Shown: piece by piece, positions 3,729-56,735 of the stretch
How the letters are laid out: the number at the start of each line of letters is the position of its first letter
How positions within the stretch are numbered: the stretch's first letter is position 1
DNA from: Macrostomum lignano
Lineage: Eukaryota
Reading direction: 5' to 3'
Assembly: GCA_002269645.1 (NCBI GenBank)
Contig: NIVC01000620.1
Span: 372,001 to 436,000 of the forward strand
Length of the DNA stretch: 64,000 nt
Position numbers and translations under genes: made by a program
The notes under the pieces: generated by a model
Seen by the model: the letters and a program-made list of their open reading frames with translations, nothing else
What the model was told of the DNA's origin: nothing
Databases searched by the model: none

Positions 3729-4335
3729 GTAGAAAAGATAAATGTATTTTGTAGTTGTGTGTTTGTTATCGAATATTACAATACAATTCATAGTAATTTA
3801 TGAAATGTTGCTTAGGCGGTTGCAAGCACAAAATACCACAGAATGATCATTCAGCCACCCTGAAGAAAAAATCTCAATGCGAAATTTTCGATGTGTGCTA
3901 CTCTTCCTGTGAAGCTGTGGGAAAGTAGTATGGAGAAGAATCACCATAGACGATATCACTCGCAAGGGCTTGTGATTTTTGTCTTCGTTTTTTTAATATT
4001 CATACGTCGTAGATCAACGAATATTCTTTTATTCTGAGGCAAAGAGCAGTGCGGTGCTATCATGACAAAATCTCGAGCCCAGTGCGCAGCTTATAGCTGC
4101 AATTCCTATGCCTATAAGTGCCCGCATTTGACGCGATTTCATGCATTTCCTTCTGGAGACAGTGCAAGGTATGCAGTTCAGAGAACACATAGTTGACTCC
4201 TGTGGTAGGAGTTTTCTTTTTTGATTTCAGAATCACTTTAGTGTTCAAACTCTTGCATCTTTCAGGTGCGAAGACTTGGCTCGGCGATTGTTTCAGTCAT
4301 TGCAGGATTTCAAATTCAGTTCTTGTAGATTTTCA

Positions 4336-7660: not shown

Positions 7661-7672
7661 TGCGGTGGCCTG

Positions 7673-8191
7673 CTAGACCGCGGCTTCTTTCGCCCTCGCC
7701 TTTTTGAGCACATCTGCCAGGGAGATATTGTTGGTCTGCAAGAAGTCTCTCCTGAGTCTCTCAGACTCGCGAGAGACTTTTTTGTCACGGATCAGCGAGT
7801 CTCTGAGGGTGCCGAACTCGCACGGCTCTGCCGCCTTGCGCAGACGCTGATACCACTGGTCGATCGGCTCGCCAGGCTGCTGTCTGTAGGTCTCAAACTT
7901 GAAACGCAGGAACACAATGTTATTCTTTCCGTCCCAGAACGTCTGGATGTTTTTTGCGAGGCTGCTGTAGTCCTCTCCAGAGGCGATCTCGTTCTCTTCG
8001 ACAACAGCCTGCAGCTCCTCTCCTGCGGCGTACAGCAGCAGCTGCTGCCCTCGAGTCTTGTCGGTGATTCCAGCTGCATTGATGTACGTGGCGAAGCGAC
8101 GAGTCCATGCAGTCCAGCGCTGTGCTGTGGAGTGGCAGTCGCTATCGATTGTAAACGGCCCGGGTGGCGCGAGTGAAATTTGCTGAGTCAT
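7673..8191 (-). pseudogene. Gypsy gag N-terminal part, ended by a premature TAG in frame with pol
   Basis: W..W..RF..Y, LLLYAAGEE, FLRFKFETYRQQPGEPIDQWYQRLRKAAEPCEFG, LIRD. It is in the same frame as ORF 5465..7660 and separated only by TAG 7673-7675. Confidence 0.9.
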
Positions 8192-8437: not shown

Positions 8438-8565
8438 CCCCCCCTGCCCCACGTTGTCTGGCTTACGCCAGGCAGCCTAAATACAATATAATGAGAATCG
8501 CTGGCGCTGAGCAGGGGACGCGCAGGCTTGCAACTTAAACGAGACCATCAAACAGATTACTTATA

Positions 8566-9185
8566 CTCAGCAACAGTCAAAAGTTCCACCCCACTAAGCG
8601 AGATGATTTTTTTCACTTATTGCGAGTGACGCAACCTACGGCACGCGCAAAGCTTATTGCCGCTTGGGGGTGGCTTGGGTCTGCTTAATGGTCCAGGCCT
8701 GGACATTAAGCAGACCCAAGCCCAGGAACAACGCCCCGACACACCAAGCCGATGCTGGTAGTCTACTGAAGGAACAGCTACAGCTGCGCACTCTGCGCTG
8801 GGCTACCCGGTCCCCAGACATGAATCCCATCGAGCATGTCTGGGACTTCCTAAAACGTAGCATTCGAAAAGAGAATCCACCATAGAATGTTGCGGAGAGC
8901 TCTGCGTCATGCCATTGAAAACGCTTCGGAGCGGCTTCCCCAGGACTTTCTGCACCGCCTCATCATTGGGATGCCCCGCAGAGTCGTCGCACTTCTGCGT
9001 GCGAGGGGATCCCACACGTATCGCGATTCTAACTGAATATTGCATAAATTTATGATTTTCCTACGAGTATTGATAGTCAATCAACTTTCCCTTCCTCGCG
9101 GCGGCTTAGTTGCGTAACTTGAGGGTTGAATTGTGAGTGTAAAGTTTTCGCAATTTGGAGGGTGGAACTTTTGACTGTTGCTGAG
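8566..9185 (+). mobile_element. Internally deleted Tc1/mariner element, 620 bp, with the transposase C-terminal fragment
   Basis: Perfect 26-bp TIRs CTCAGCAACAGTCAAAAGTTCCACCC (8566-8591 and 9160-9185) flanked by TA. Internal NNAPTH...WATRSPDMNPIEHVW and LRHAIEN...LIIGMPRRVVALLRARG. Confidence 0.93.
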
Positions 9186-10460
9186 TATACTACTGAAAAC
9201 TATCCACTTAGCTGGTTACGCCACCTGCTCTCCGCTGAGTCGTTCATACACTGAGTTGATCATCGCCAGTAAGTTCGCGTGTTTGAGTTACTACTTTCGG
9301 AATAGTTCTGGACTTGGGAAGTTTAAGGACGGACTGCCGACGCTTCGTGACGCGACCTCCGCTCAGAATTTAAGTTCAGTCCGGCCAGCGGACTGAAGCG
9401 AACTCGCGCTCGCCCGTTGGGGAGTTCTTTTAGTTCGATCAGACGGCTCGACACGACAGATCTACGACCATTGAGACAAATTTAACTTTGTCTCATTGAG
9501 ACAAAGAGAATCATAATCAGTTATTTCATTTAGCTGGTTTAAATGCATAATAATTTTGCATACAAATATTTACAAATCTTATTGGCTTTAAAAAATTACA
9601 CTATTTTGGCCATGCTTTTTTTAATATTTGTCAAATAATATATTCAGATTGCATACTAAGTAATATATAAATCCTTCCGGCTTTCTAGGGCAGAAAGGAG
9701 GAGAATCCGAGGGCCGCCCTAGATAACCTGCTGGATTTGTATTCCTTCTTGATTTTGCGGGCGGGCCGAGAAACGACATTCTTCGGCTCGCGAGTCAAAC
9801 TGCATTTGCTTCAGTCTAAGTTCAGTGCAAGTCCTGATTCTCGGCCCGCAAGAAAATGGAATTTGTCTATGGCACAAAATGCAAACTGTATTTCATTTTA
9901 GCTCTGAGCCTAAAAGAGCGACTGACAAAGTAATACACTCGTAATTAGTCTAACTTTTTATTAAAACTGAATTTCATTAACTCCTGACCCGAGCGTTCTG
10001 AGAACATGACATCGCCTCCTTCTGACTCCTGTATAGAAGGAGGCGAGATTTCTGGATTGCAGCGCGAAGAAATCGACTTTGTATGCCAACTCCGTGGCCG
10101 TGGGCGAATGTTCAATCAGTACACTGGCTTGCCTGTGCCTGGAATTGGAGTCAGCAAGGCGCTCGACAACGGCCTGTTGGATGATCTTATAAGTGATTTT
10201 CCTATAAGTAAATACCTCTGAACGCCATGTACTGTAAAGACGGCGTGGGTTGCACCACAAGACTATATTAAATCGTTACTGTTGTCCTCTTTGTAATGTA
10301 ACGATATATACCGATTTTTTACGCAATTACGCGCTTACGCAATTGCTGCCGAAAAAAATCGGTACATGTCATTATTGTACCCTTTTGACTTCCCTTGTCT
10401 ATGGCCCAGACATAGTGCGGATGCTGAGTATGAAATGCGATTGTTGCCGGAATGCGCTTT

Positions 10461-22602: not shown

Positions 22603-25600
22603 CACGGTTAGGCTGGGCACTGATATTGAGGAAAAAATTGCCACAAGACGGCACCTATGTGCCATTAAACTACTGCCTTTCTGTAGTTTGGAAAGCCCAC
22701 TCATTAAAATTCATGTGCCTATCTTTGCTGTGTATGGCACTATATGTTTCGGTACACTTTAAAACAAAATATTTTATTGCTCTAATAGAATTTTTGCTAA
22801 TCAGATGATAATTATGAATAGACCACAAAGGACTTTGGGAGTAAATATTGCCCCATATCTGCTTGAGCAATAAAACGCTGCACCACAGGTAGCTTATGCC
22901 TTATAATTGCAGTCATAAAGAGGAATTTATCAATAGTAATAACACAGTAGTATCTTATCTATAATTGCTTTGTAATATTTCTGCCAGGTGCGTTAACTTG
23001 GTTATCATACTGCTCAATTTACTTATAAAGGTTTGATCTAGTTCTATTTGATCTAAAACAAGCGAGTGCCTGAACTGAAAGAGCTGTTTGCATAGCTTGT
23101 ACTGTCTACAATGCCAACGACAAAAAAAACTCATAACGAGAACAGGCAAAGTTTGTGCCTGCTCTGCTTGAGACGAGCTTCTGCGCTGATTTCTTCTTGC
23201 TCTAATTTCGAATCCGTGGCAGCCGACTTGTTCCAGGACTACGAGGCAGTGCGGCACTTTCTACCTGAAGGAGTTTGCCAGGGCTGCAGGCGCGTTTTAT
23301 CGTCACTAAGAAGTCTGACGCCTCGTGCTCTGCCACCGCGACCAGATTACGAGAAGATAATAGCCGACATGAAGAGTCTGCCTCCAGCCACCAGAAGCAG
23401 ACCGGATTGCAACTGCCAACTGTGCGAAATGGCTCGTGGCAATCACCACAAAGGCAGCGATCCAAAGACGCCTTACACAACAGGTCCTGCTCGAGCCCCA
23501 CCTGGTCGACCACGCGAAAGATCCCCAGCACCAGCTGAAGGAGCAACGGCTGTGCTTTCCTGCTCATACTGTCATTCTCCAGTTGGGCGTGGCAAACAGC
23601 ACAAATGAAACTCGACAGCTAAGGTGACTAACATCGAGCAAACAGTCAGCCCAAGGACAAGGGAGATGCTGGCCAGCAACTGCATTGCCGAAAAGACGGG
23701 TGGGTCGACGGCGGATTCGAATTCGATCACTCTGGCCAGACATCGAGGCGGCCATCCGATTCGAGTTGCTGTGCATGTTGCTCAAAACAGCAGTGCGAGC
23801 TTTCCTCCAACGAGGACGGACACTATGATGCACTTGAAAACAACTCTGAATCTGAGCAACAATCAAGTGCTACAGGCTGCTCAAGTGCTTCGTGCTGGCG
23901 CGAGCTCATCTCGTGCAGTCGAGTCAAACTTGAAGAAAATTTTGGTACAGCAAAATCGAGCATTAGAGGATTACTTCGACATCCAGAATCTCCAGTTCTC
24001 GGAGCTGACCTCGACTGCCGCAACAGCCGACACTATTTGCCGCCCGACTGTTGTCTGCAACGACTCGGTCAAACTCATTGCACATGTTGCTCAGCAACGC
24101 AGTTTCAATGATTTTCACTGTCTGCTGGGTCTCGATGGTGGCGGCGGATTTTTTAAAGTTTGCGTTTCGATAATTGGCTCTAACGCAAAACCCGAAATCG
24201 GAACTCGAGGAGCCAACAGCAGGAAATTCTGTGACACGGGTGTCAAGAAGATCCTGTTGCTTGCGATCGTCAACGACGTTCCTGAGACTTACGGAAATAT
24301 TCAGGCTCTGCTAGAGGCGATCGCTGTCAACGAACTTCAAATCCCAGTCACTGCAGATATGAAAGTTGCAAACATCATCTGCGGACTGCAACCTCATTCC
24401 TGTACACATCCGTGCCCCTATTGCGAAGCTCTGGCTCCTCTTACAGAAAATGGTGTGCCAAGAACTCTTGGGAGAATTCGGCAGTTTGCTCAGCAGTTTC
24501 AAGCAGCTGGCCAAGTTCGTGCAAAGGCAAAGAACTTTAAAAACTGTGTCAACATGCCACTGCTACCAGGCGATGATGACAAAGAAGTTTTGATGCTTCT
24601 GCCGCCACCTGAGCTGCACCTGCTCCTTGGAGTCAGCAACCGACTGCTGGACAAGCTCAACGAAGCTTGGGGTGCGAATCGCGCGTTCGAGTGGGCTCAT
24701 CAGCATGGCATTATTCGAGCTGATTACAGAGGTGGCATGATGGAAGGAAACGCCTGCCGCCAGCTGCTCCGCAAATCACCGCAGCTTCACGCTGATCTGC
24801 CTCCACCATTACAGCCGTACGGGGCGTGTCTGATGGCGTTCGATCGGCTGGTCAGCAGCGCCTTTGGAACCGAATTGGCGGCAGACTTTGAAGAGGCAAT
24901 TGAGAATTTTCGACTGGCCTACATGAGCTTAAGCTTACCTGTCACCCCAAAAGTTCACGTTGTCTTTTGCCATGTTGGAGAGTTCTGCCGGCGGACAGGG
25001 CAAGCGCTTGGCAGCTGCAGCGAGCAAGCAGTGGAGAGTGTTCACTCTGATTTTGCCAAAACGTGGTCACGGTACAGCCTGCCAGCGCACCATGCTGAGT
25101 TTGGCCAAAATCTTTTGCGCGCCGTGGTTGCTTACAACAGCCACCACATTTAATCCCGGTAACTCGGTTTTCTGCTTTACTGGTAAAAGAAATGGCAGTG
25201 GTTGTTAGTCTTACAGTAAAGTAGTATTCAAAGGACCCTATAAATTTAAAATACTAAAATTTTTGCAAGCTCCCGTACTGTAGAAAGCTTTCATACTTTT
25301 GCTACTTTATATGCTAATACGAGCGTACCTTGCAATATTATTGCAGAAATGCATGTAGTTCTGGTTAATATTTGAGGAACTTGCTACACAAAAAGAATAT
25401 AGTTATTTCGAAATTTTTCTATAAAACCCATGCTGTTTCTGAGTATTTAAATGTAAACAATTTGTAATGTTAGAAATCGTAAAATTATTTAACTTACTAA
25501 CTTACAAGCTAGTTAACAAGTAAAACAAGCAATAATACTACACAAACATTAACCTAAATAAACTTCTTGTAATCTTGTACTCTTTTTTGTACAAGTATAC

Positions 25601-40321: not shown

Positions 40322-40922
40322 CTGAAAAGAAAATAAAAAATTGACATGATATTTCGTCAGAACGCTATTAATTTGGATGTCAGGATTTCAGATAGTTTAC
40401 AGAGTAACGGTAATTTGACTATAAATTTTTAAATACAAGCCATGCTTATTGAACAAAAAAGCCTTACAAAGACAACAATATATTCATGCCAATATTTTTG
40501 CAGCAAGCAAATTATATATACTGCCAAGAAAAAAGACAGATTAACAGCAGTAGCAGGAAAAATTGTTTGTAATACGGAAATTATAAACAGTGGATATTTT
40601 TCGAAGAGTAAACTCTGAGCACATAATAATAAATCGTTGAAGAAGTATTGCACAATGGTGGAGAGGGATGAGGGAGTAGGGTGGAGTTATAGACAAAGTT
40701 ATAGACAAACAAGTTGACTTTGTTTTTTATTATTAATATTAGTGCGAACCGCTGCTGCGAAGTATCGGGCACTAATTGCAAACCAGGCTGTCCGCTGTTC
40801 CGCTGGCAAGGTGCCGAGCCTTGCCACGCTGGCCAGTCTGGCAACACGCAGCAGCGTTTGTGGTTTGGGAAAGGTCTTGGTCACTGAACTGTAAAAACGT
40901 GATCCCTTCTGAACGTTTAAAC

Positions 40923-40938
40923 GTCCCTTTTCTGGGCC
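40923..40938 (+). promoter_or_regulatory. Degenerate histone-type stem-loop
   Basis: AAAC-GTCCCT-TTTC-TGGGCC-A; two mismatched stem pairs. Confidence 0.35.
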
Positions 40939-42333
40939 ATTAAATTTGTGATTCTTGCGTTTAGTCAACTCTTTTAACTCCGCCATTGCCGGTCCCCAGC
41001 CCGGATGAAAAAGGAGGGAAAGAAAATATGCATATGCTCACGTTCGTGTCACTGTTTTTCTGTTTTCATTTTTGATAAAACTGTCTTGCCATTTTCCACT
41101 TGAAATGTTTTTTTATGCTTTGTCTTTCTTATTTTCCGCATAATGGTATTTTGACATGGTGGACATTGTGTGTAGTATTTACAACGTAAATTACGTTGTA
41201 AACTAACGAACGTAGTCAACTAAAAAGTCAACGTCAAAAGTCAAAGGCTTTAACTAAAATGCCGCCGGGAAGCCTGGCTCTGGGCCGTGACCCGGTCGGA
41301 GCTGGGCATTCTTTAAGCTGTCGGCTGACGCTGCCGCGCCAGCACCTGGGAAGCCAAGGAAGGCAACAATCGTGCAAAGGCCTCCAAAGCACGCTTACAA
41401 ACACCCTATAGAGCAGTGTCAGACACGCTGGCAAACACCCTGCAGTTTCTGCAAGTAAAGCCAGTTGCTCTCGCAACTTACAACTAATCAAAACGACTAA
41501 AGTGAATTTAGTGAGTTTAGTAGGCCAAAAAAGGTGAATTTACTACCTAAAAATTTGGTACACTGTGGGTATCTATTTTAGATACGTAGTCAAAACATTT
41601 CACTACCCATAGACTTCCGTATCAGCCTCGCACAGTGCCTGTACTGGGTTGTACTATCAGTGTGAGCGGAGTATCATCGTCTCTCATCACGCTCAGGAGC
41701 CTCGGTGAGTCTGGTCATGCGACCTTTTCTTTTTTAGAGCGCAAATTAAGACCAGAGAGAAGAGAGGTGAAGGAAAAGACGAGAGAAGAGTGGGAGGAGA
41801 GGAAAGAGAAAAGAGAAAAGAAATGAGATAAGAGAGATGAAAAAGAAGAGAAATGAGAGAAGATACGAGAGAAGAGGGGAGAGAGGAGAGAGTAAAGAGA
41901 AGAGAGGAGAGAGCAGAGAGGAGAGACGAGGGACGAAACAGAAGAGAGGAAACCTCTCTCCTAATAGCTGTGGGAATTATTTATTTTTACTATTTTCTGT
42001 TATTTACTATTTACTATTTACTGTTATTTTTACATTGGCGGCCCTGTCGGTGGCAATGGTGGCGGCCATGACGACGGTGGCCCTGGCGGCGGTGGCCCTG
42101 GCGGCGGTGGCCAGTTTTGATATCAGAATACACATACAGGAGCAGTAAAACGGTTTTTGCCAAATTATTAAGACAAGTTTGTGGACAAGTCATTCACGAT
42201 GTTACATTTTTGAGAGTTTGACTTACGTTTATGGTTTGAGTTTTTTTACCTTGTACCGAATAACGATTTTAAAGGCGTTTAACCCTTAAAAAGATGCCAT
42301 ATAATGTTTGCGGACACTACATGTATAGTTTAG

Positions 42334-42607
42334 CAGGGGCGCGACTAGAGGTTTCAGGGGGGGCGCTAAAATGAGTGCCTGTGGCGCAAAAATGAGTGCC
42401 TGTGGCGCAAAAATGAGTGCCTGTGGCGCTAAAATGAGTACCTGCGGTGCTAAAATGAGTGTCTGCGCCGCTAAATCGAGTGGCTGGGCCGCTAAAATGA
42501 GTGCTGACAACACTGATTCTGATAATAATGTACGTGTAGAAATTTCGTCGTGTACATGTAGAATTCTTGGCTTTGTCCCCCATTATAAAATCCATGGCGA
42601 CGCGCCT
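42334..42607 (-). mobile_element. hAT-like MITE of the 21-bp GGCACTCATTTTAGCGCC family
   Basis: Head TAGGCGCGTCGCCATGGATTT...GGGGACAAAGCCAAGAATTC read leftward; internal 21-bp repeats. Confidence 0.7.
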
Positions 42608-43008: not shown

Positions 43009-43180
43009 CAGGCGCGTCGCCATGGATTTTATGGTGGGGGGACAAAGCCAAGAATTCTACATGTACATGTACACGACGAAATTCCTACACGTACATCATA
43101 ATCAGAATTGGTATTGTCAGCACTTATTTTAACGCCGCATGCACTTATTTTAGCGCGGCAAGCACTTATTTCAGCTCCGT
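43009..43180 (+). mobile_element. Truncated copy of the same MITE family, back-to-back with 42334-42607
   Basis: CAGGCGCGTCGCCATGGATTTTATGGTGGGGGGACAAAGCCAAGAATTCTACATGTACA. Confidence 0.7.
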
Positions 43181-45290
43181 GTGAAATGGTGTCTTAGCTT
43201 TTGTGACCTCGGAAGCATTTATTTGATCCTTTGAGGTCTACAGAGAAGCACTAGAGCGAAACTTAAGCTAGTCTGGCAGCAACCTACTATTATTAGTAAG
43301 ACACTCGACAAATTTAGCTTAATTTGAAGCCCCTATTTCGGCTACAAAGATCTGCATTCGGCATTCTGAACATCGGCAAAACTAGACCACTAAGCCGCGA
43401 CCACAGCTACCCTCCCCCTGAGCTTGAGGAACTCAGCAGCGGAGCTCCCTATCATCTGCAAGCCAAAGTTCTCATTGAAGTTTGTTTGAAATGTCAAAAC
43501 GCACTAATTAGAATGGCTAGAACGAACAAATTAAAACCGGTCACCTAATACAAATTAGTCCTCCTAAACCCCTTTGACCTCAGTAGGATTAATAATTAAT
43601 ATTTGCAGTAAGAAGCCCTAAAATTTTATTAAAAACTGAAAAAAGAATAGAATATAGTAACAAATAGAACAATATTATAACCTAGACTATAGGTTACATG
43701 TATGCCAAAAAATTGATCTGTTTAAAAGTAGGCTTATAAATTTATGCCAATCTTTTTTGCATATAAATATTAATTAATTTATTCATGCCAAGCATGAAAA
43801 TTGCAAGGTAATGGAACATTTTACGTGAAAAAAAGAAAATTTGTATAGTTATAAAAGTCAATTATAGAAGTTTTGTTTTAATAAAATAAAGAATAAATAA
43901 AATTAGTAAATTTTAAATAAAATTAGGCTTAATGATAGAATTTATAATTTAACTTTGAGAGCCTAGCTTAGGACTAGGTAGGAGCCTGATATATTTTATC
44001 TAACATTAGTAACAAGATGTCAAGATTCTTTTGTATACTAACAGTTTAGCCTAAGTAGACAAGATTGACCAACTTGACCTTTTGACTAATGGGTTTTCTT
44101 AGCTAATAAAACAGCCCTTAAAAGGGCAGTTTTAACAAAATTCTACCTTTGCTTCAGGCTTAGAAACTTGCTGGAAGTCATAAATAGCCTAGGCCTATAG
44201 AGCAGAGATCTAAGGAATAAAGATAAATATATTTCAGTTTTAGTTAATTCTGTACATTTGTAGTATTACAGCACAACTGATTCAGTGAATCAGTGATTCC
44301 TCTATTATGCTGTATTATATATAGACCTATATATACCACTATCAATACAGGATATCAACGCCTATGGCTATGTATCTACTGTAAAAACTGAAATGCCTTC
44401 GCGAAAAAAGCTTTCATATAGAAATGGCAGACAGTAGTCAGTCAGAAATCAAACTTACCGTCCAAGTCCAATGCTTAGACTCCTAAGACGCATTAAGTCA
44501 TTAAGTCTTAAGTCCACATTAACTTACCCAGATAAATTTATGACCCATCTGGTCTATAGAGTTTATTCTACAGGCTGGGTTCCCACTCAAGGGTGGATCC
44601 ATATCTTATGGCCCCGTTTTAAATTAATTTAAATCGGGTTGAATTTACCAAGTAGAAAAACTCACTAATCGATAATTTTAAAAACGAGTGCAGACAATTT
44701 TTATTGGACGCGGCAAAAATTCCTCCTATCGCCAAGTGCCATACCATGTCATTTACGTTACTGGCTACTCATAGTAAAAATGCAACAAAACATTGAGATA
44801 ATTTTCGCTTTAACTAATCATTTTTATTGAGCTAAGAGCTTACTTTTCCTTGTTTAAAAGCTAACAGCTAACAAAGCTAACAAAAGCTAACAAAATGAAT
44901 AATCAATAATTAGACAATTCTTACAAGTTAACAAGTTCATACCATTAGTAAGGTGCCAAAAATTAGCAATTCGATTTAATTATTTTCCAAAATTATCAAA
45001 CAGTTTTAAAGAGTTATACAACAACACAGTCTAAAAATGTTGGTGCTAGTGCTAGCGCTCCCGTTTGTGGCTGGCGCTCTTTGATACGCTGAGTATGCTC
45101 TAATCTTATCCTAAGTAAGTTATTAACTAAACAATTTAATTTGACAGAAAATTCTAAACAGGCTCTAAGAAGCAGTAGACTCCAGTTAGCAGTCCATAAA
45201 AACTTAAAGTTTTAAAAAGTTTTTGAACGCGTTTGATGAGAAATAAATTACAAAGAATTCCCCGGGTCGTCAAGCAGAAAGTTTCTTGCT

Positions 45291-45630
45291 TGTCCTGAAA
45301 AGGGCCGTTTTTAAACATTTACTAGTTACTACTGCTTTTGCTCGGTCAGAACAGGGTCATGCAGGCACATTAAAATCAAGAATTCATGTTAAAAGAGTTT
45401 TGAAGCATTCGAATAAAAGTTCAATAAAATCAATTCCCTTGGTTATAGTTATAGTTTGTGTGTTGGTCCTGAGCTGAAAGAACGGTTTTGAAGAATTACT
45501 ATTTACGTTGATCTGCCGGTTCAGAGCAATGCAGTTACATGAAATTCAATAGTTCATGCTAAGAGTTTTGCTGTGCTCTTTAAATACCTGTCCCCAAGTG
45601 AGAGTTTGAGTGGTTGCCCTGAAAAGGGCC
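45291..45630 (-). promoter_or_regulatory. Orphan histone-type 3' stem-loop cluster A (45291-45306, degenerate 45465-45490, 45615-45630)
   Basis: Minus strand AAAAC-GGCCCT-TTTC-AGGACA and AAAAC-GGCCCT-TTTC-AGGGCA-ACCAC. No histone ORF upstream. Confidence 0.7.
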
Positions 45631-46229
45631 GTTTTATCGATTACTATTTACTTCACTGTTTACCCATAGCGGGCTTTTGCCATTTTGCTATTTATAGCTT
45701 ACTTAAGCCATTATCCTAACTGGCTTAGTAGGTAATATATAAATAATTACCTATTATTTCACTAAGATTAATAATTTAAATCTTCCATTTATATATATAG
45801 TCTTCCTAAAAGCTTTAAACAGCAGAATCAGTCACAAATGGAGTTTTACATACCCACTGCCACTACCCAGTCATCATGTGACAGCTGATAGGTCCATTTA
45901 TAGTTATATTACCTTAATTAACTTATCTGGGCATGACATCGTCAAATCAAATCCCCTTCTTGAGGGGAACCCCTTCTCCCCCCAGACCCCTTACCCTTAT
46001 GCATGTAATATTCCAGCAACATTGGAAAGTCGGTTCGGCATGCACCGGCAGAGGTCGGCACTCTATATATGCAGTAATGTCTGTTGGACTATTCTGAAAT
46101 CAAAATCAAATATGCGAGAAAAAGCTCTGCGGCTGCGGGCTGCGGGCAAATCTGGGCGGAAAATCTCTCTGTGCCGTCGGCGGGCAATTCGACTGCAGGT
46201 GCTACTCGTGCTCGCGCTGCCGCCTTCCC

Positions 46230-46540
46230 TCTTCTCCCTTCACTCTAACCCCATCTCCCTTCACTCTAACCCCATCTCCCTTCACTCTAACCCCATCTCC
46301 TTTCACTCTAACCCCATCTCCTTTCACTCTAACCCCATCTCCTTTCACTCTAACCCCATCTCCTTTCACTCTAACCCCATCTCCCCTCACTCTAACCCCC
46401 TCTCCCTTCACTCTAACCCCATCTCCCTTCACTCTAACCCCTCTCCCTTCACTCTAACCCCTCTCCCTTCACTCTAACCCCATCTCCTTTCACTCTAACC
46501 CCATCTCCCTTCACTCTAACCCCCTCTCCCTTCACCCTAC
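46230..46540. repeat. 21-bp minisatellite, related to 54160-54570
   Basis: CTTCACTCTAACCCCATCTCC units. Confidence 0.95.
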
Positions 46541-46744
46541 CTTTATATTTCACTATACCACGCACCCTCTCCCTTCAATTTACTCTCTTTCTCCCTTTAC
46601 TCTACCCCTTGTCCCTTCACTCTATCCCCTCCCTCCCCCATTTCACACGTCTCACTCCCCTCTACCGGTGGGAGAAAAGGAGATAGGAGAGAAAAAGGGT
46701 ATGATGAGATAGGGGGAAATAGTAGAAGAGAGAGGGAAATAGGG

Positions 46745-47300
46745 GAGGGAGGGAAAGAGGGGAGAGAGGGAAAGAAGGGAGAGAGGGAAAGAGGGGAGAG
46801 AGGGAAAGAGGGGAGAGAGGGAAAGAGGGGAGAGAGGGAAAGAGGGGAGAGAGGGAAAGAGGGGAGAGAGGGAAGAGGGGAGAGAGGGAAAGAGGGGAGA
46901 GAGGGAAAGAGGGGAGAGAGGGAAAGAGGGGAGAGAGGGAAAGAGGAAAGAGAGGGAAAGAGGGGAGAGAGGGAAAGAGGAAAGAGGGGAAAGAGGGAAG
47001 AGAGGGAGAGAGGGGAGAGAGGGAAAGAGGGGAGAGAGGGAAAGAGGGGAGAGAGGGAAAGAGGGGAGAGAAGGAAAGAGGGGAGAGAGGGAAAGAGGGG
47101 AGAGAGGGAAATAGGGGAGGGAGTGAAAGAGGGGAGAGAGGGAAAGAGGGGAGGGAGGGAAAGAGGGGAGAGAGGGAAAGAGGGGAGAGAGGGAAAGAGG
47201 GGAGAGAAGGAAAGAGGGGAGAGAGGGAAAGAGGGGAGAGAGGGAAAGAGGGGAGAGAGGGAAAGAGGGGAAAGAGGTGAGAGAGGGAAAGAGGGCAGAG
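46745..47300. repeat. 17-bp purine-only minisatellite
   Basis: AGGGAAAGAGGGGAGAG units. Confidence 0.95.
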
Positions 47301-48580
47301 AGGAAAACAGAAACCTCAAACTTTAAAGTACGGAAGCTCTAACAAAAAAGTTTGAACAAAGTGCATATTTCAAACATTAATAATGCTTCAGGGCTATCGT
47401 CAATATTATGAACGCAAATTTTTTTTGAACAAAATTTTCTCCGATACAAAGTCAAGAAGTGATTTAAAAGATCCATTGTGAGTGAGTGGTGAGCATGCAA
47501 ATGTGAATAAAAAATATGGTTGATTTTCTACAGATTTAACACAAAAAACGCAAATTATACTACTGATATTATACTTCTAAAATAACATGCATGTCAAAGA
47601 AATTATGTAATGGTAATAATATAAAATACGCTATCTTACGAGAGCGAAATTTAATCTACAATCTCTGTGTGTGAAGTATATCTACTTCTCTATCTATATT
47701 TTTTAAATATCATCCACTTCTGCCCATCTTACTTCCGGGAGTTCTGATATGCAGAGTCGATGTACATGATGCATGCACACATGCAAAATTTATTGCAAAT
47801 TATATTGAACACCGCGAACCTGAGCCAAAGGAAATTTGGGGTTGTTGGATCACTTGGATTGGCACAACACCATATATTGCATTTATCAATATACACAGCC
47901 AAATGCAGTATTACTGGAAGTAGTGCACGCAGTCTGCCTAAACCACTATTTAAATGCTGCCATGCAAATTTTACTTCTCCACTATGACCTCTCCTTTCAT
48001 CAGTAATTTCCCATAGTATTCCCATGGTAACAGCTCTATCTCACCCAGTCTAGCGCGTATCTCAACCAGTCTGGCACATCTCATAGTCTGAAAAACACTG
48101 AGACTTATGCTGGGTGGCCAATAGTTACTTTAATTTAAATACATGTATCAAACTGCATTTATATTGGAAGCTTTATTGCTATTTTTTCACAGAGTTTACA
48201 CGATTCTAGCTAAGATTTTATCCCTAATTCTTAAATTATGAAAAATGTCCTTTATGACTCAATCCTATTATGCAGATCAGGGGTCAGACAGTCTCTTTTA
48301 CTTCAAGAGCCTCGTTTTGATGATGATGAGTTCAGCTCATGACTGCGGCACGGATAAGAGTGGAAAGGCGAGAGATAGGATGAGACTGGTCGGAGAATAG
48401 ACAAAACAGCAGATAAGAGAAGATAAAAGAGAAGAAGAAAGGAGAAAGAAAGGTGAGAAGTGAGAAGTGAGAAGTGAGAAGAAAGGAGAACTGGAGAGAT
48501 CCAAAGGGTAGAGAGTGTATACTCGTAGAGAAGAGTGGGGAGGAAGGAGAGGGGAGAGAAGAGAAGAGAGCAGAGAAGAG

Positions 48581-49076
48581 TAGGGATTGCAATCCCGGGA
48601 TCCCGGTATCCCCAAATCCTGGGACTAATTTTTGTTAATTTTTACAAAAAGTGCTGTAATCTAAACATAATTAGGCCCACAAGTAGTTTATTATATACTG
48701 CACTAATTTCCGTTAATTGCCTCACGTCACGTGGCACCTTTTTAAACCCCGCATCACAGATTTAAATGTGAAATTGATTCCAATTTAAATTTTGATATGA
48801 TTTGCTTCTTTACTACTAATTAGTACATTTATACTACTTACTTCAATAGGTCACAAGATAATGCTGTTTTTCATCTACAAATAGATCATTATCTCTATAA
48901 CAATAAAAAATTAAGCAAAAAAGCGTTTAGCGCATATTTTGCCTTAAAATTTTAACCTAGAAGCATAAAAATCTGTATTATTCTGATCCCGGGATTCAAT
49001 CCCGGGATTGGCCAAATTCCGGGATTAAATCCCGGGATGCCGGGATCACAAAAATCCGGGATTTTGCAATCCCTAG
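48581..49076. mobile_element. hAT-type MITE, 496 bp; duplicate at 51535-52017 has a damaged left TIR
   Basis: TIR TAGGGATTGCAA, 8-bp TSD GAGAAGAG, subterminal CCCGGGAT repeats. Confidence 0.9.
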
Positions 49077-49314
49077 AGAAGAGACACAAACCCTAAGCAC
49101 GAACGATCAGCGCATTATAAATGCGATTTATAATTAGATTCGAGGTGGAGAGAATATCAGTGCGAGAAAGAGACCAATGGACGACAGATAATGCCTTTTA
49201 CAATAAATAAATAAATATATATATATATGTGCATGTGCTTTTCGATGCCTGTGCTTTTCACAGCACCCCCCTCGGTCACCACCCCCCAGGTAAGTCTGTG
49301 GGAGCTTTCCAATT

Positions 49315-49810
49315 TCAGGGGGCGTCGCCATGGATTTATGGTGGTGGGGGACAAAGCCAAGATTAAGAATTCAATTAAAGTTCCCATATTGTTTAGGGAA
49401 TCAGTGTGTTTTTAGCATTCATTTTGGCGCCGCAGGCACTCATTTATTGGCATTGACACCATAGGCAGGCACTCATTTAGACTCCACAGGCACTCATTTT
49501 GGCGCCGCACGGCCGCAGGCACTCATTTTGATGCCGCAGGCACTCATTTTAGCGCCGAAGGCAGGCACTCATTTTGGCGCCGCAGGTACTCATTTTGGCG
49601 CCGCAGGCACTCATTTTGGCGCCGAAGGCAGGCACTCATTTTGGCGCCGAAGACAGGCACTCATTTTGGCGCCGAAGGCAAACACTCATTTTGGCGCCGA
49701 AGGCAGGCACTCATTTTGGCGCCGAAGGCAGGCACTCATTTTGGCGCCGAAGGCAGCTGCACTCATTTTGGCGCCGAAGGCAGGCACTCATTTTGGCGCC
49801 GAAGGCAGGC
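49315..49810 (+). mobile_element. 21-24-bp-repeat MITE family copy with about 12 TTTTGGCGCC motifs; duplicate at 52257-52750
   Basis: Head CAGGGGGCGTCGCCATGGATTT; array of GGCAGGCACTCATTTTGGCGCCGAA. Confidence 0.8.
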
Positions 49811-50208
49811 AGGCCAGGTAAATTGAAAATACATGTAACCTTAACATAGCCAGTTAACAACTTTGCCTTAACACTCTGCAGTGACAAAGGTGACACAGTC
49901 TATAAATAACTAAAGACACTGGCTTTATTTAACTCAGGATCAAGCTTCATATATATGCAGTTTTTCTTACAAATCAATCAATATTTCGGCTTTCAATTTT
50001 TGATCAATTTTTGAAACTTTAGGAGAGCTGGCGGCCCCGCCCCCAAGCCTTACGCCCACGCTAAGCTAACAAAATCAGGTGCACTCAAAGAAGGTTGAAT
50101 TTTAAGAAAAATTTTAAGAATTTTAAGAATCATCAATTCGATTTACAATTCTTTTCCAAAATAATCGAACAGCTTAAAAAGAAAGATTTAAAGAAAATGA
50201 ACTTTTGT

Positions 50209-50877
50209 GACCCTGAAAAGGGCCGTTTTAAAGATAAATTTTTTAATTTGCTGCCGGAACAGGAGCAACAAAGGCACATAAAACGCAGGCACAACTAAGT
50301 GCTAGCGCCCCCTGCGACGGAGTCCTCAGTGATGGCGCCCGTTTGTGGCTGGCGCCTTTTAATGCGCGCATTTTGAAAAAATTAATTTGGCAACGAATTC
50401 TAAATAAAAAGGTTTTAAACAGCAGTAGTAGTGAATGCAAAATTAAATAAAGAGTTTTGGTGTGTTCAAATAAATAATTGAATGAATTAAAATTAACTTC
50501 CAAGGTCCCCAAAAAATGTGTGGTAGCCCTGAAAAGGACCGTTTTATACATATACTATTTTCTTTGCTCTGTCAGAACGGAACAAGGCAGGCACAAAGAA
50601 CACACGCTAAAATAATGTTTGCTGCGCACATTAGTGCTAGCGCCCCTAGCGATGGCGCTCGATTGTTGGTGGCTGGCGCCCTCTAGTGCGCGCGTTAATT
50701 TTAGCAAATAGTTTATTTAGTAGCAAATCCTAAACAGCAAGGTTCTAACTAAACATTAGTAGTAGAGCAAATGCAAAATTTAAAGTTTAAAAATAGTTCA
50801 ACGCGTTGGTTGAAAAATAAATTAAAAAGAATTCCCCTGGTCGCCATGCAAGTAGTGTGCTGGACCTGAAAAGGGCC
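50209..50877 (-). promoter_or_regulatory. Orphan histone-type stem-loop cluster B (50209-50224, 50525-50540, 50862-50877)
   Basis: AAAAC-GGCCCT-TTTC-AGGGTC-ACAA, AAAAC-GGTCCT-TTTC-AGGGCT-ACCAC and AAAAC-GGCCCT-TTTC-AGGTCC-AGCA. Confidence 0.75.
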
Positions 50878-53150
50878 GTTTTAAGTATTTACTTCTTACT
50901 TTGCTTGGCCAGAACAGGGTAATGCAGGCACATTAAAAAATACACACGAAAAGAGTTTTGAAGTGCTCGAATTAAATGACGTAACAGCTCTATCTCACCC
51001 AGTCTAGCGCGTATCTCAACCAGTCTGGCACATCTCATAGTCTGAAAAACACTGAGACTTATGCTGGGTGGCCAATAGTTACTTTAATTTAAATACATGT
51101 ATCAAACTGCATTTATATTGGAAGCTTTATTGCTATTTTTTCACAGAGTTTACACGATTCTAGCTAAGATTTTATCCCTAATTCTTAAATTATGAAAAAT
51201 GTCCTTTATGACTCAATCCTATTATGCAGATCAGGGGTCAGACAGTCTCTTTTACTTCAAGAGCCTCGTTTTGATGATGATGAGTTCAGCTCATGACTGC
51301 GGCACGGATAAGAGTGGAAAGGCGAGAGATAGGATGAGACTGGTCGGAGAATAGACAAAACAGCAGATAAGAGAAGATAAAAGAGAAGAAGAAAGGAGAA
51401 AGAAAGGTGAGAAGTGAGAAGTGAGAAGTGAGAAGAAAGGAGAACTGGAGAGATCCAAAGGGTAGAGAGTGTATACTCGTAGAGAAGAGTGGGGAGGAAG
51501 GAGAGGGGAGAGAAGAGAAGAGAGCAGAGAAGAGTAGGGATTCCCATCCCGGTATCCCCAAATCCCCTAATTTTTGTTAATTTTTACAAAAAGTGCTGTA
51601 ATCTAAACATAATTAGGCCCACAAGTAGTTTATTATATACTGCACTAATTTCCGTTAATTGCCTCACGTCACGTGGCACCTTTTTAAACCCCGCATCACA
51701 GATTTAAATGTGAAATTGATTCCAATTTAAATTTTGATATGATTTGCTTCTTTACTACTAATTAGTACATTTATACTACTTACTTCAATAGGTCACAAGA
51801 TAATGCTGTTTTTCATCTACAAATAGATCATTATCTCTATAACAATAAAAAATTAAGCAAAAAAGCGTTTAGCGCATATTTTGCCTTAAAATTTTAACCT
51901 AGAAGCATAAAAATCTGTATTATTCTGATCCCGGGATTCAATCCCGGGATTGGCCAAATTCCGGGATTAAATCCCGGGATGCCGGGATCACAAAAATCCG
52001 GGATTTTGCAATCCCTAGAGAAGAGACACAAACCCTAAGCACGAACGATCAGCGCATTATAAATGCGATTTATAATTAGATTCGAGGTGGAGAGAATATC
52101 AGTGCGAGAAAGAGACCAATGGACGACAGATAATGCCTTTTACAATAAATAAATAAATATATATATATATGTGCATGTGCTTTTCGATGCCTGTGCTTTT
52201 CACAGCACCCCCTCGGTCACCACCCCCCAGGTAAGTCTGTGGGAGCTTTCCAATTTCAGGGGGCGTCGCCATGGATTTATGGTGGTGGGGGGACAAAGCC
52301 AAGATTAAGAATTCAATTAAAGTTCCCATATTGTTTAGGGAATCAGTGTGTTTTTAGCATTCATTTTGGCGCCGCAGGCACTCATTTATTGGCATTGACA
52401 CCATAGGCAGGCACTCATTTAGACTCCACAGGCACTCATTTTGGCGCCGCACGGCCGCAGGCACTCATTTTGATGCCGCAGGCACTCATTTTAGCGCCGA
52501 AGGCAGGCACTCATTTTGGCGCCGCAGGTACTCATTTTGGCGCCGCAGGCACTCATTTTGGCGCCGAAGGCAGGCACTCATTTTGGCGCCGAAGACAGGC
52601 ACTCATTTTGGCGCCGAAGGCAAACACTCATTTTGGCGCCGAAGGCAGGCACTCATTTTGGCGCCGAAGGCAGGCACTCATTTTGGCGCCGAAGGCAGCT
52701 GCACTCATTTTGGCGCCGAAGGCAGGCACTCATTTTGGCGCCGAAGGCAGGCAGGCCAGGTAAATTGAAAATACATGTAACCTTAACATAGCCAGTTAAC
52801 AACTTTGCCTTAACACTCTGCAGTGACAAAGGTGACACAGTCTATAAATAACTAAAGACACTGGCTTTATTTAACTCAGGATCAAGCTTCATATATATGC
52901 AGTTTTTCTTACAAATCAATCAATATTTCGGCTTTCAATTTTTGATCAATTTTTGAAACTTTAGGAGAGCTGGCGGCCCCGCCCCCAAGCCTTACGCCCA
53001 CGCTAAGCTAACAAAATCAGGTGCACTCAAAGAAGGTTGAATTTTAAGAAAAATTTTAAGAATTTTAAGAATCATCAATTCGATTTACAATTCTTTTCCA
53101 AAATAATCGAACAGCTTAAAAAGAAAGATTTAAAGAAAATGAACTTTTGT

Positions 53151-53982
53151 GACCCTGAAAAGGGCCGTTTTAAAGATAAATTTTTTAATTTGCTGCCGGA
53201 ACAGGAGCAACAAAGGCACATAAAACGCAGGCACAACTAAGTGCTAGCGCCCCCTGCGACGGAGTCCTCAGTGATGGCGCCCGTTTGTGGCTGGCGCCTT
53301 TTAATGCGCGCATTTTGAAAAAATTAATTTGGCAACGAATTCTAAATAAAAAGGTTTTAAACAGCAGTAGTAGTGAATGCAAAATTAAATAAAGAGTTTT
53401 GGTGTGTTCAAATAAATAATTGAATGAATTAAAATTAACTTCCAAGGTCCCCAAAAAATGTGTGGTAGCCCTGAAAAGGACCGTTTTATACATATACTAT
53501 TTTCTTTGCTCTGTCAGAACGGAACAAGGCAGGCACAAAGAACACACGCTAAAATAATGTTTGCTGCGCACATTAGTGCTAGCGCCCCTAGCGATGGCGC
53601 TCGATTGTTGGTGGCTGGCGCCCTCTAGTGCGCGCGTTAATTTTAGCAAATAGTTTATTTAGTAGCAAATCCTAAACAGCAAGGTTCTAACTAAACATTA
53701 GTAGTAGAGCAAATGCAAAATTTAAAGTTTAAAAATAGTTCAACGCGTTGGTTGAAAAATAAATTAAAAAGAATTCCCCTGGTCGCCATGCAAGTAGTGT
53801 GCTGGACCTGAAAAGGGCCGTTTTAAGTATTTACTTCTTACTTTGCTTGGCCAGAACAGGGTAATGCAGGCACATTAAAAAATACACACGAAAAGAGTTT
53901 TGAAGTGCTCGAATTAAATGACGTAAAATTAATTCTCAAAGTCCCCCCTAAAGTAAGCTTTGTGCTGGCCCTGAAAAATGCC
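53151..53982 (-). promoter_or_regulatory. Orphan histone-type stem-loop cluster C (53151, 53467 and 53804 are duplicates of B; 53967-53982 is unique)
   Basis: Same motifs plus AAAAC-GGCATT-TTTC-AGGGCC-AGCA. Confidence 0.75.
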
Positions 53983-54159
53983 GTTTTGAAGATTTACTAT
54001 TTGAAGATTCAGATCGAAATCATTAACGATAGACCATAGACAGAATAGACACTATTCTCCTTTTCCTCGACCCCCTTACCCATCAGTTTACCCTCTCCAC
54101 CCTTCAGTCTACCCCCTCTCCCTTCACTTTACCCCCTCCTCCCTCCACTCTATCCACCC

Positions 54160-54572
54160 TCTCTCCATTCACTCTACCCCTTTCCCTTCACTCTACCCCT
54201 CTCCCTTCACTCTACCCCTTCTCCCTTCACTCTACCCCTCTCCCTTCACTCTACCCCTTCTCCCTTCACTCTACCCCTTCTCCCTTCACTCTACCCCTTC
54301 TCCCTTCACTCTACCCCTCTCCCTTCACTCTACCCCTTCTCCCTTCACTCTACCCCTTCTCCCTTCACTCTACCCCTCTCCCTTCACTCTACCCCTCTCC
54401 CTTCACTCTACCCCTCTCCCTTCACTCTACCCCTCTCCCTTCACTTTACCCCCTTCTCCCTTCACTCTACCCCTCTCCCTTCTCACATAACCCCCTTCTC
54501 CCTTCACTTTACCCCCTTCTCCCTTCACTTTACCCCCTTCTCCCTTCACTCTACCCCCTCTTCCTTCACTCT
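54160..54572. repeat. 19-21-bp minisatellite
   Basis: CCCTTCACTCTACCCC(T)TCT units. Confidence 0.95.
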
Positions 54573-55319
54573 ACTGGAGTGGCGGATCTACATGTAGAAT
54601 TTCATTTTGGGGCGGGGGGCGGTCCAAGTGAGTATGAGGTGCTCCAATTTTTAAGCTAGGGGCGCAAATAAGCGTGTAGCTAGGGGAGGGGGCAAAAAAT
54701 CACGATTAGGGGCGCAAGCTTAGGTTTTTGGGAGCTCAATATGTTCTATCAAAGTATTTCCATGGGCGAAGAGAATGTTAGAGGGGGGATGGGAGAGGCA
54801 CTGCAAGCAGCTGCACTCATGGTGGAGACGACGAAGATGGAGCGCAGATTCTGAAGATCTTGTCGATCTGCAAAGCCAACCAGAGCTTTTGTGAACGCTG
54901 TCTCGGAGGACCGACATGACGCAGTGTCGATCGAGTCGCTCTGATCTAGTGGGTCGCCACTAACTGGAGGAATTGGTGGCGGGCGTTGGCGCTCTCAGGA
55001 GTCTCCACACGGAGCCGGAGGTGCATGTAGATGAAGATCGGGCGTCAGCGAGGCGTACCTTGAAGCATTTTTATTGCTGGTATTTTATAGATTGGACTAG
55101 CAATCTAGTTGCCCCCTCTTTTGGGGGCGCCCAATGAGGAAGGACCAAATTAAAAAAATCCATTAAAAAAGCACATTTTCTTCGGAACCTTATTCGTGTA
55201 AAATTGTCACGGACAAAAATGTTCTCTATGAATCTCTTTTTTTCTAAAATTAACAAAAGTACACAACAAAATAAAGACTTCGCAAAGATAACAGGCATTC
55301 CCACTGAATAAAAAGTATC

Positions 55320-56165: not shown

Positions 56166-56735
56166 CAGTGGCGTCGCCATATGGGTTTGGCGGGGGTGAC
56201 AACGCCAAGAATTCTATATGTACCTACAACTAAATTCCCATGTACATTATTTTAAGAAACTGCTCATTTTAGCGTCGCAGGCCCTAGCACCGCAGGCACT
56301 CATTTTAGCGCCGCAGGCACTCATTTTAGCGCCGCAGGCACTCATTTTAGCGCCGCAGGCACTCATTTTAGCGCCGCAGGCACTCATTTTGGCACCGCAG
56401 GCACTCATTTTAGCGCCGCAGGCACTCATTTTGGCACCGCAGGCCCTCATTTTGGCACCGCAGGCACTCATTTTAGCGTCGCAGGCACTCATTTTAGCGT
56501 CGCAGGCACTCATTTTAGCGCCGCAGGCACTCATTTTAGCGCCGCAGGCACTCATTTTGGCACCGCAGGCCCTCATTTTGGCACCGCAGGCACTCATTTT
56601 AGCGCCGCAGGCACTCATTTTAGCGCCGCAGGCACTTATTTTAGCGCCACAGGCACTCATTTTTGCGCCGCAGGCACTCATTTTAGCGCCGCAGGCACTC
56701 ATATTTTAGCGCCGCAGGCACTCATTTTGGTGCCA
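56166..56735 (+). mobile_element. 21-bp-repeat MITE family copy with about 21 units
   Basis: Head CAGTGGCGTCGCCAT...GCCAAGAATTC; array of GCAGGCACTCATTTTAGCGCC. Confidence 0.85.

Follow-up and report, generated by a model that had tools for sequence, protein, structure and literature searches.

Contig NIVC01000620.1 of the Macrostomum lignano genome (assembly GCA_002269645.1) carries an array of short minus-strand hairpins resembling the 3' stem-loop of replication-dependent histone messenger RNAs (mRNAs), within the 64-kb window analysed here (contig positions 372,001 to 436,000; coordinates below count from its first letter). Ten co-oriented copies of the consensus AAAAC-GGCCCT-TTTC-AGGGCC-ACCA were located by reading the minus strand and by scanning for a 6-bp stem with a 4-nt loop, with a 22-mer consensus (AAAACGGCCCTTTTCAGGGCCA) giving 10 matches at three or fewer mismatches in the 64 kb compared with 0.00 in 100 dinucleotide shuffles. 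All ten had been listed in an initial annotation of this DNA, which also counted seven as independent of a recent duplication; this count holds, the other three being fresh duplicates within a 2.95-kb tandem duplication whose segments are 99.5% identical. The 3' arm given there, AGGRYC, was too strict, the arms seen being AGGGCC, AGGTCC, AGGGCT, AGGGTC, AGGGCA, and AGGACA. The motifs are spaced 163, 337, 316, 150, and 174 bp apart. A covariance model, R1, trained on seven copies (including unit U1 and a copy at 44113-44128, with unit V2 left out; Table 1), recovers the untrained, degenerate V2 copy at 45465 with 47.8 bits and an E-value of about 2e-6, and searches with R1 and blastn reveal no other copies, either elsewhere in the 64 kb or across a further 169 kb of M. 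lignano sequence. No histone open reading frame (ORF) precedes the motifs, as the annotation had noted, with tblastn searches using H1, H2A, H2B, H3, and H4 (E<=10) finding no histone coding sequence near the array or elsewhere in the window; exact look-ups of the window's reading frames, for overlapping annotated genes or other copies, returned no record.

On sequence grounds the motif belongs with the 3' stem-loops of histone mRNAs, sharing with replication-dependent histone 3' ends (Rfam family RF00032) the A-rich flank, a 6-bp stem that starts with GG and is closed by U-A, a UUUC loop, an ACCA-like 3' flank, and a purine- or G-rich downstream box, with the consensus core identical to that of real genes. 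The loop TTTC and the 5' flank AAAAC are present in all six aligned copies, in keeping with a UYUN loop and an A-rich flank, and the 3' flank reads A(C/G)CAC in four of the six, with ACAAA in U4 and AGCAA in V3. A scan of public metagenome contigs for the exact 21-mer core returned 138 matches at 120 loci; a recognisable gene for H2A, H2B, H3, or H4 ends no more than 150 nt upstream of 61 of these matches, with the core typically 11-59 nt past the stop codon. H1 genes on metagenomic contigs also carry the identical core.

The units that contain the motifs are 150-340 bp long and form two clusters. Cluster 2b (54010-53060, minus strand) comprises, in order, a 20-bp satellite, units U1, U2, U3, and U4, and a short tail, and cluster 1 (45660-44950, minus strand) comprises V1, V2, V3, and V4 followed by the same tail, with the two tails (44958-45010 and 53067-53121) 82% identical by blastn. 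The units are 62-69% identical overall, with many indels, neighbouring units being 62-66% identical and the two clusters 63-68% (45020-45504 matches 53538-54002 at 68% by blastn), and self-comparison places segment 50159-50619 on the next repeat, 50472-50959. A long unit equals a short unit with an insert of ~170 bp between the sequence boxes AAAACTCTT and TGTGCCTGC, and the deletion in V4 was read from an alignment of U3, U4, and V4. The two copies of the 2.95-kb duplication differ in 15 columns, all of them indels except one substitution, with the indels at 48588-48624 together with two single-base indels, and the junctions share the microhomology TTAC; the duplication is a very recent event, or possibly an artefact of the assembly. 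A related satellite lies upstream of each cluster (54052-54471 and 46229-46666, 78% identical by blastn), which makes the two clusters copies of a larger block of satellite, units, and tail. Three layers of history are thus apparent: an old amplification of units, an old duplication of the block, and a very recent 2.95-kb duplication. Head-to-tail copies, nested later duplications, the lack of coding capacity, and a repeat-rich setting are all as in a tandem repeat or minisatellite derived from a gene fragment. The window is gene-poor and, besides numerous mini- and microsatellites, holds the pol region of a retrotransposon, a Tc1-like remnant, and a small element with inverted repeats.

Table 1. 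Stem-loop units, associated boxes, and repeats in the window
Feature	Position	Strand	Sequence and setting	Stem condition; hairpin energy (kcal/mol); scores
U1 stem-loop	53967-53982	-	GGCATT-TTTC-AGGGCC, flanks AAAAC / AGCAC; first unit of cluster 2b, adjoins 20-bp satellite	One unpaired position and one wobble; -3.1; R1 72.4 bits, with U1 in the training set
U2 stem-loop	53804-53819	-	GGCCCT-TTTC-AGGTCC; short 163-bp unit; near-identical copy 50862-50877	C-U mismatch at pair 3; -4.2; no RF00032 match at E<=10
U3 stem-loop	53467-53482	-	GGTCCT-TTTC-AGGGCT; long 337-bp unit; near-identical copy 50525-50540	Six pairs including two G.U wobbles; -6.3; RF00032 19.9 bits
U4 stem-loop	53151-53166	-	GGCCCT-TTTC-AGGGTC; long 316-bp unit; near-identical copy 50209-50224; no G-rich downstream box	G.U at second pair; -8.7; RF00032 25.3 bits, best in window
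Cluster 2a	50209-50877	-	Duplicate U4 (50209-50224), U3 (50525-50540), and U2 (50862-50877) stem-loops, within the 99.5%-identical tandem duplication	Units identical to cluster 2b counterparts
V1 stem-loop	45615-45630	-	GGCCCT-TTTC-AGGGCA; first unit of cluster 1	G-A mismatch at basal pair; -8.0; RF00032 17.3 bits
V2 degenerate unit	45420-45514	-	AAAACCGTTCTTTCAGCTCAGGACC; stem-loop near 45465	~5 nt inserted in loop region, three 5'-arm changes; -2.8
V3 stem-loop	45291-45306	-	GGCCCT-TTTC-AGGACA; unit paralogous to U2	4/6 pairs left; -1.4
V4 long unit	44960-45290	-	Keeps GGGGAATTC, GCGCCAGCCAC, GCGCTAGCAC; then shared tail	TGTGCCTGC through stem-loop deleted (~85 bp)
Probable eighth independent copy	44113-44128	-	AAAAC-TGCCCT-TTTA-AGGGCT after AGCAAAGGTAGAA; absent from initial annotation	
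Weak stem-loop-like match	40918-40939	+	TAAACGTCCCTTTTCTGGGCCA, then CAACTCTTTTAAC ~30 nt later	
U2 upstream boxes	53842-53901	-	AAAACTCTT 53893-53901, TGTGCCTGC 53866-53874, CTGTTCTG 53852-53859, AGCAAA 53842-53847	
G-rich downstream box (example)	53773-53779	-	GGGGAAT	
Other G-rich boxes	53941-53946, 53447-53452, 50831-50837, 50505-50510, 45590-45595, 45433-45438, 45257-45263	-		
Tandem duplication, 2.95 kb	48027-53926 (48027-50984 + 50981-53926)		99.5% identity; cluster 2a made from 2b	
20-bp satellite	54066-54574		Directly upstream (minus strand) of cluster 2b	
Related satellite	46233-46539		~600 bp upstream of cluster 1	

Two further sequences resemble the motif. The copy at 44113-44128 matches 18 of the 22 consensus positions, at a calculated chance expectation of about 0.004 per window, and aligns with the units by blastn over 42-58 nt at 69-76% identity; its R1 score is discounted because it belongs to the training set, and it is probably a solitary degenerate eighth member of the family. 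The plus-strand match at 40918-40939 agrees with the consensus at 19 of 22 positions, a level not reached in shuffles, with four of its six stem positions able to pair and no detection by R1, and its membership of the family is uncertain.

The boxes that precede the stem-loops in order are specific to the array, with AAAACTCTT, TGTGCCTGC, CYGTTCYG, and AGCAAA, as well as the GC-rich GCGCCAGCCAC and GCGCTAGCAC, occurring in the window only there and only on the minus strand. The order seen in U2 is repeated at 45337-45401 in V3, and in U3 and U4 with the roughly 170-bp insert. The ordered boxes of the initial annotation are accordingly present, although the distance of 25-30 nt given between AAAACTCTT and TGTGCCTGC does not apply to the long units, in which AAAACTCTT lies ~200 nt upstream of the stem-loop or is absent. 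The U2 boxes show no coding signal and match the 3' ends of histone coding sequences no better than shuffled sequence. The long units also contain TTTTGCAT at 53713-53720 and 53377-53384 (duplicated at 50771-50778 and 50435-50442), ~230 nt upstream of their stem-loops, which, judged by eye, may be a 7/8 match to the octamer ATTTGCAT; this octamer is known from the promoters of H2B and small nuclear RNA (snRNA) genes.

Downstream of the stem-loops the annotated G-rich box is likewise found, with GGGGAC or GGG(G)AAT present 14-27 nt beyond the stem in six of the seven independent copies. The box starts 14, 19, 20, 24, 26, or 27 nt after the stem, and one copy is without it, compared with a median of 11 nt (interquartile range 9-13) for the purine-rich 7-mer of 59 distinct genuine histone-linked stem-loops. 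In histone pre-mRNA processing, U7 acts as a ruler for the distance between stem and box.

The stems themselves are damaged throughout. The perfect consensus stem GGCCCT/AGGGCC is found in none of the seven independent copies, with two of the seven fully paired through G.U wobbles only and the remainder carrying one or two mismatches or an insertion. Across the six aligned independent stem-loops 86% of pair-cells are paired (5/36 unpaired, 4/36 G.U), a fraction equal to that of shuffles, and no compensatory change is seen. Four of these six have a change in the terminal CC of the stem, which is described as invariant for the histone stem-loops of mammals (PMC4604434). Hairpin energies range from -8.7 to -1.4 kcal/mol (Table 1) against -11.4 kcal/mol for the consensus, and when 83 nt are folded, U3 and U4 are the only two of the seven copies to form the whole six-pair hairpin, with V1 keeping five of its six pairs. 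Furthermore, putative transcripts of 120-140 nt show no excess fold stability on either strand (z of -0.1 to +1.3 against shuffles).

Searching the units with Infernal and RF00032, the check suggested alongside the initial annotation, gave no match in the window at the gathering threshold of 34 bits, scores of 25.3 (U4), 19.9 (U3), and 17.3 bits (V1) in E-value mode, and nothing for the other copies. In a calibration with stem-loops of the same core, genuine histone-linked copies score 27.5-35.6 bits and transposase-linked copies 36-38 bits. The 34-bit threshold alone is not decisive because many genuine histone stem-loops also fall below it; the window copies lie under the genuine range. No transfer RNA (tRNA) or other Rfam family was found in the array, and a tRNA-like origin considered for the GC-rich insert of the long units yielded nothing.

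The array probably arose long ago through local tandem amplification of a histone-type mRNA 3'-end cassette, which has become detached from coding sequence and is now decaying. Its anatomy, duplication layers, stem damage, absence of covariation, low Rfam scores, and lack of nearby coding sequence are direct observations, from which we infer an absence of selection on the array for RNA-gene function. The cassette would consist of the A-rich flank, the 6-bp/4-nt stem-loop, the ACCA-like flank, and the G-rich downstream box, and would derive from the 3' end of a gene using stem-loop/U7-type processing, be it one for a replication-dependent histone or one carried by a transposon. A short 3'-end segment may have been copied head-to-tail into units of 150-340 bp in a satellite-prone intergenic region, with the satellite, units, and tail later duplicated as a block to give clusters 1 and 2, and a 2.95-kb piece duplicated again in a very recent step. 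Drift since the early duplications would have brought the units to ~65% identity, leaving at least one defect in each stem, one stem-loop deleted, and one with an insertion; at most the two or three best-kept copies (U4, V1, and U3) might retain SLBP binding and the cutting of a read-through transcript. The histone stem-loop type proposed in the initial annotation thus stands, supported by the shared 21-mer core, whilst its interpretation as SLBP-binding mini-genes finds no support in the stems, which are damaged and lack covariation. The alternative it offered, an amplified 3'-end relic, is in better agreement with the stem damage and the diverged units, although the source need not be a histone gene.

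Compared with functional replication-dependent histone 3' ends, the array lacks a preceding histone gene, the stop codon of which would be expected some 10-80 nt upstream, its stems are imperfect and score below both the threshold and the genuine range, its downstream box is further off and variably spaced, and the element sits in 150-340-bp tandem units. A further parallel is found in histone pseudogenes, orphons, and gene-fragment repeats, which are likewise detached, duplicated, drifting, and embedded in repeats, although the part preserved, or ever copied, is here limited to a 3'-end cassette of ~100-150 nt, and no coding remnant is recognisable. Decayed C-terminal codons of H2A (GVLPNIQAVLLPKK) or H2B (..SSK*) were considered for TGTGCCTGC..CTGTTCTG..AGCAAAGTAA and are unsupported: alignment of the upstream 70 nt to 59 real histone coding-sequence 3' ends is no better than with shuffles, H2B ends reach at most a z of about 2-2.6 in three units before correction for multiple tests, and under this idea U2 and V3 would differ at first codon positions. 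No Macrostomum histone is among the best 120 of 7,824 matches in an H2B protein search, and a gene with a 'Histone' domain in another M. lignano contig (L125) was rejected as a real histone, being an NF-YC-type histone-fold factor without a stem-loop.

Several observations weigh against simple decay. The 18-nt sequence AAAACGGCCCTTTTCAGG is unchanged in four of the seven independent copies despite ~35% overall divergence of the units, stem-loop positions depart from the consensus at ~9-12% compared with roughly 20% expected from overall divergence by our estimate, and pairs of copies share 84% identity over the stem-loop block compared with about 65% overall. Conserved columns also cluster in the seven-copy alignment (p of about 0.0002-0.0006), which is anchored on the stem-loop, whereas in pairwise alignments the clustering of matches over ungapped columns is not significant (p of about 0.1-0.15), such that the expectation of boxes much better conserved than spacers is weakly supported. 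The impression of very diverged spacers stems in large part from indels where the sequence is AT-rich. The paralogous units V3 and U2 agree best over TTTTAATGTGCCTGCATNACCCTGTT (25/26) and CGACCNGGGGAATTCTTTNTAATTTA (24/26), at 92-96% identity, rather than over the stem-loop, with neither block showing a coding signal or similarity to histone coding-sequence ends. Additionally, an AT-rich, TATA-like stretch, such as TATTTAAA at V2, was recognised by eye upstream of AAAACTCTT. The conserved blocks and the AT-rich stretch would allow some constraint, or a promoter.

The cassette could also, although this is unlikely, come from the tail of a DNA transposon in which a histone-type stem-loop ended the transposase gene. 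The initial annotation had taken such stem-loops to be essentially confined to histone genes, a prior that the metagenome scan changed, with transposase and other non-histone frames ending in the same structure; judged from these contigs, the histone-type stem-loop is not restricted to histone genes in some eukaryotes. Contigs L011, L041, and L050 contain Tc1/mariner (DDE_3) transposons with terminal inverted repeats of about 200 bp, in which a perfect histone-type stem-loop with the same 21-mer core lies 13-21 nt past the transposase stop codon, inside the element, and is followed by a purine-rich box. The L050 transposase ORF exceeds the Pfam DDE_3 cut-off (32.9 vs 28.6 bits) and that of L011 falls just under it (25.9 bits), with the L011 stem-loop reaching 37.9 bits with RF00032, above the Rfam threshold. 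Nine further contigs (L002, L030, L038, L039, L042, L065, L086, L088, and L100) have stem-loops and were assigned to the Tc1/mariner type by a shared ...GGHFEHQL*-type ORF ending alone. In L046 (1203-1475, minus strand), eight tandem histone-type stem-loops with a 24-nt period, followed by GAAGGAA, lie 70 nt past the stop codon of a full-length piggyBac transposase of 585 aa (Pfam PF13843 and PF13842), and two tandem stem-loops are present in each of L050, L088, and L110, the last being related to the L046 piggyBac. The closest named relatives of this piggyBac are 44-45% identical and come from Patiria (starfish) and Haliotis (abalone), with no stem-loop in the Patiria copy, and a 72%-identical contig ends 116 nt past the stop codon. 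Other non-histone frames ending 9-26 nt before the same stem-loop (L036, L064, L016/L068/L089, L029, and L083/L102) include a Tpt1/KptA RNA 2'-phosphotransferase domain, a protein kinase, and several without a family. Among the papers searched, none reports histone-type stem-loops in transposons, in repeats, or in Macrostomum.

The stem-loops on Tc1/mariner and piggyBac transposases make a transposon origin of the cassette conceivable, since histone-free stem-loops and tandem amplification are both seen in mobile elements, as is a purine-rich box downstream; moreover, the window is rich in transposons and the upstream boxes of the array are unlike histone coding-sequence ends. However, the elements in question (L011, L041, L050, L046, and L110) have perfect stems placed 13-70 nt past an intact transposase frame, inside terminal inverted repeats, with a period of 23-26 nt, whereas the array has degraded stems in 150-340-bp units and neither a reading frame nor inverted repeats. 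No Tc1/mariner or piggyBac remnant is detected by tblastn within several kb of the array, the clusters are not enclosed by terminal inverted repeats, AAAACTCTT has no inverted partner, and the only Tc1-like remnant of the window (8563-9189) has no stem-loop after its reading frame. The 169 kb of other M. lignano DNA contains no copies, and none of these stem-loop-bearing transposons could be assigned to flatworms.

It is distinctly unlikely that each unit is a mini-gene, in which a promoter would direct RNA polymerase II to make a non-coding, SLBP-binding RNA of ~85-110 nt that is cut after the stem-loop through SLBP and U7 and serves as a decoy or regulator. The ordered, co-oriented boxes, the G-rich box kept in six of seven copies, the TATA-like stretch just upstream of AAAACTCTT, and the standing of the 5' flank, 5' arm, and loop as the best-conserved block across all copies would suit such a gene. 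The units would also resemble tandem small-RNA arrays (5S ribosomal RNA, spliced-leader RNA, and snRNA) in their head-to-tail arrangement, their length of a few hundred base pairs, and their ordered internal boxes. Functional arrays of this kind, including histone repeats, are homogenised by concerted evolution, whereas the units here are about 65% identical and variable in length, match no family, and give no structural signal. No copy has an intact stem or covariation, scores lie under those of genuine stem-loops, the stem-loop is missing from one unit and interrupted by a loop insertion in another, and the spacing from box to stem varies two-fold, at odds with the ruler function of U7; nor is there excess fold stability, and the array is local and low in copy number. 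In favour of the mini-gene reading, flatworms do use stem-loop-terminated histone mRNAs and U7 (PMC10954484, PMC6312358). The narrower proposal, in which the better-preserved units (U3, U4, V1, and the duplicates of these) keep active AT-rich promoters and yield stem-loop-terminated, non-coding RNAs of ~90 nt through SLBP/U7 cleavage, is very unlikely. A plus-strand reading, in which GGCCCT-GAAA-AGGGCC-GTTTT would form a GNRA-type hairpin with a T run behind it and terminate a small RNA (for example of RNA polymerase III), is barely credible, since although the reverse complement does form a hairpin followed by GTTTT and AAAACTCTT also reads ...GTTTT on that strand, five minus-strand features (flank, stem base, U-A closure, UUUC loop, and ACCA) match the histone type, no A/B boxes, tRNA-like parts, or Rfam matches occur on the plus strand, internal T runs would shorten any polymerase III transcript, the folds are no stabler than shuffles, and stem damage is equal on either strand.

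Other repeats surround the array. A 21-25-bp satellite, GGCGCCAAAATGAGTGCCTGC(CTTC), occurs in both orientations at 42362-42560, 43064-43179, 49487-49811, 52429-52753, and 56285-56728; it has GTGCCTGCCTT in common with U3 and GGCGCCA in common with the long-unit insert, and for this reason may have been born from the stem-loop units. An element of ~490 bp, present at about 48585-49073 and about 51525-52017, has terminal inverted repeats GGGATTGCAA(AA)TCCCGG and an inner cluster of CCCGGGAT palindromes, with one terminus differing between the duplicated copies, and looks like a miniature inverted-repeat transposon. The degenerate Tc1-like transposon at 8563-9189 is bounded by 30-bp terminal inverted repeats (8563-8592 and 9160-9189) and holds a broken transposase remnant (8724-9015), whilst a GC-rich retrotransposon at 4293-8191 (minus strand) has long, overlapping, frameshifted frames that by eye are gag-, protease-, reverse-transcriptase-, and integrase-like. 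At 23111-25153 (plus strand), a protein of 680 aa without a Pfam domain is 100% identical to BOX15_Mlig012066g1 (contig NIVC01000105.1, in reversed orientation), with 59%-identical paralogues and identical copies in several M. lignano contigs (L122-L129) and many relatives of 30-40% identity in metagenomes and Hydra, a few of which carry PF06918; its gene, judged by this distribution, behaves like that of a mobile element.

Should the array be a relic, it would document a histone-type 3'-end cassette cut loose and amplified as a tandem repeat, would mark a region prone to the generation of tandem repeats, and would mean that scans for histone stem-loop motifs will pick up dead copies. If the units were instead expressed, they would be the first known non-coding genes with SLBP/U7 processing, of relevance to the histone-mRNA and flatworm stem-cell fields, and their RNAs could titrate SLBP or feed a PIWI-interacting RNA (piRNA) pathway targeting stem-loop-terminated transcripts in flatworm stem cells. 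A possibly weightier by-product is that, in uncultured eukaryotes, intact transposase genes from two superfamilies carry perfect histone-type stem-loops at their 3' ends, which suggests that mobile elements borrow S-phase-coupled mRNA 3'-end formation.

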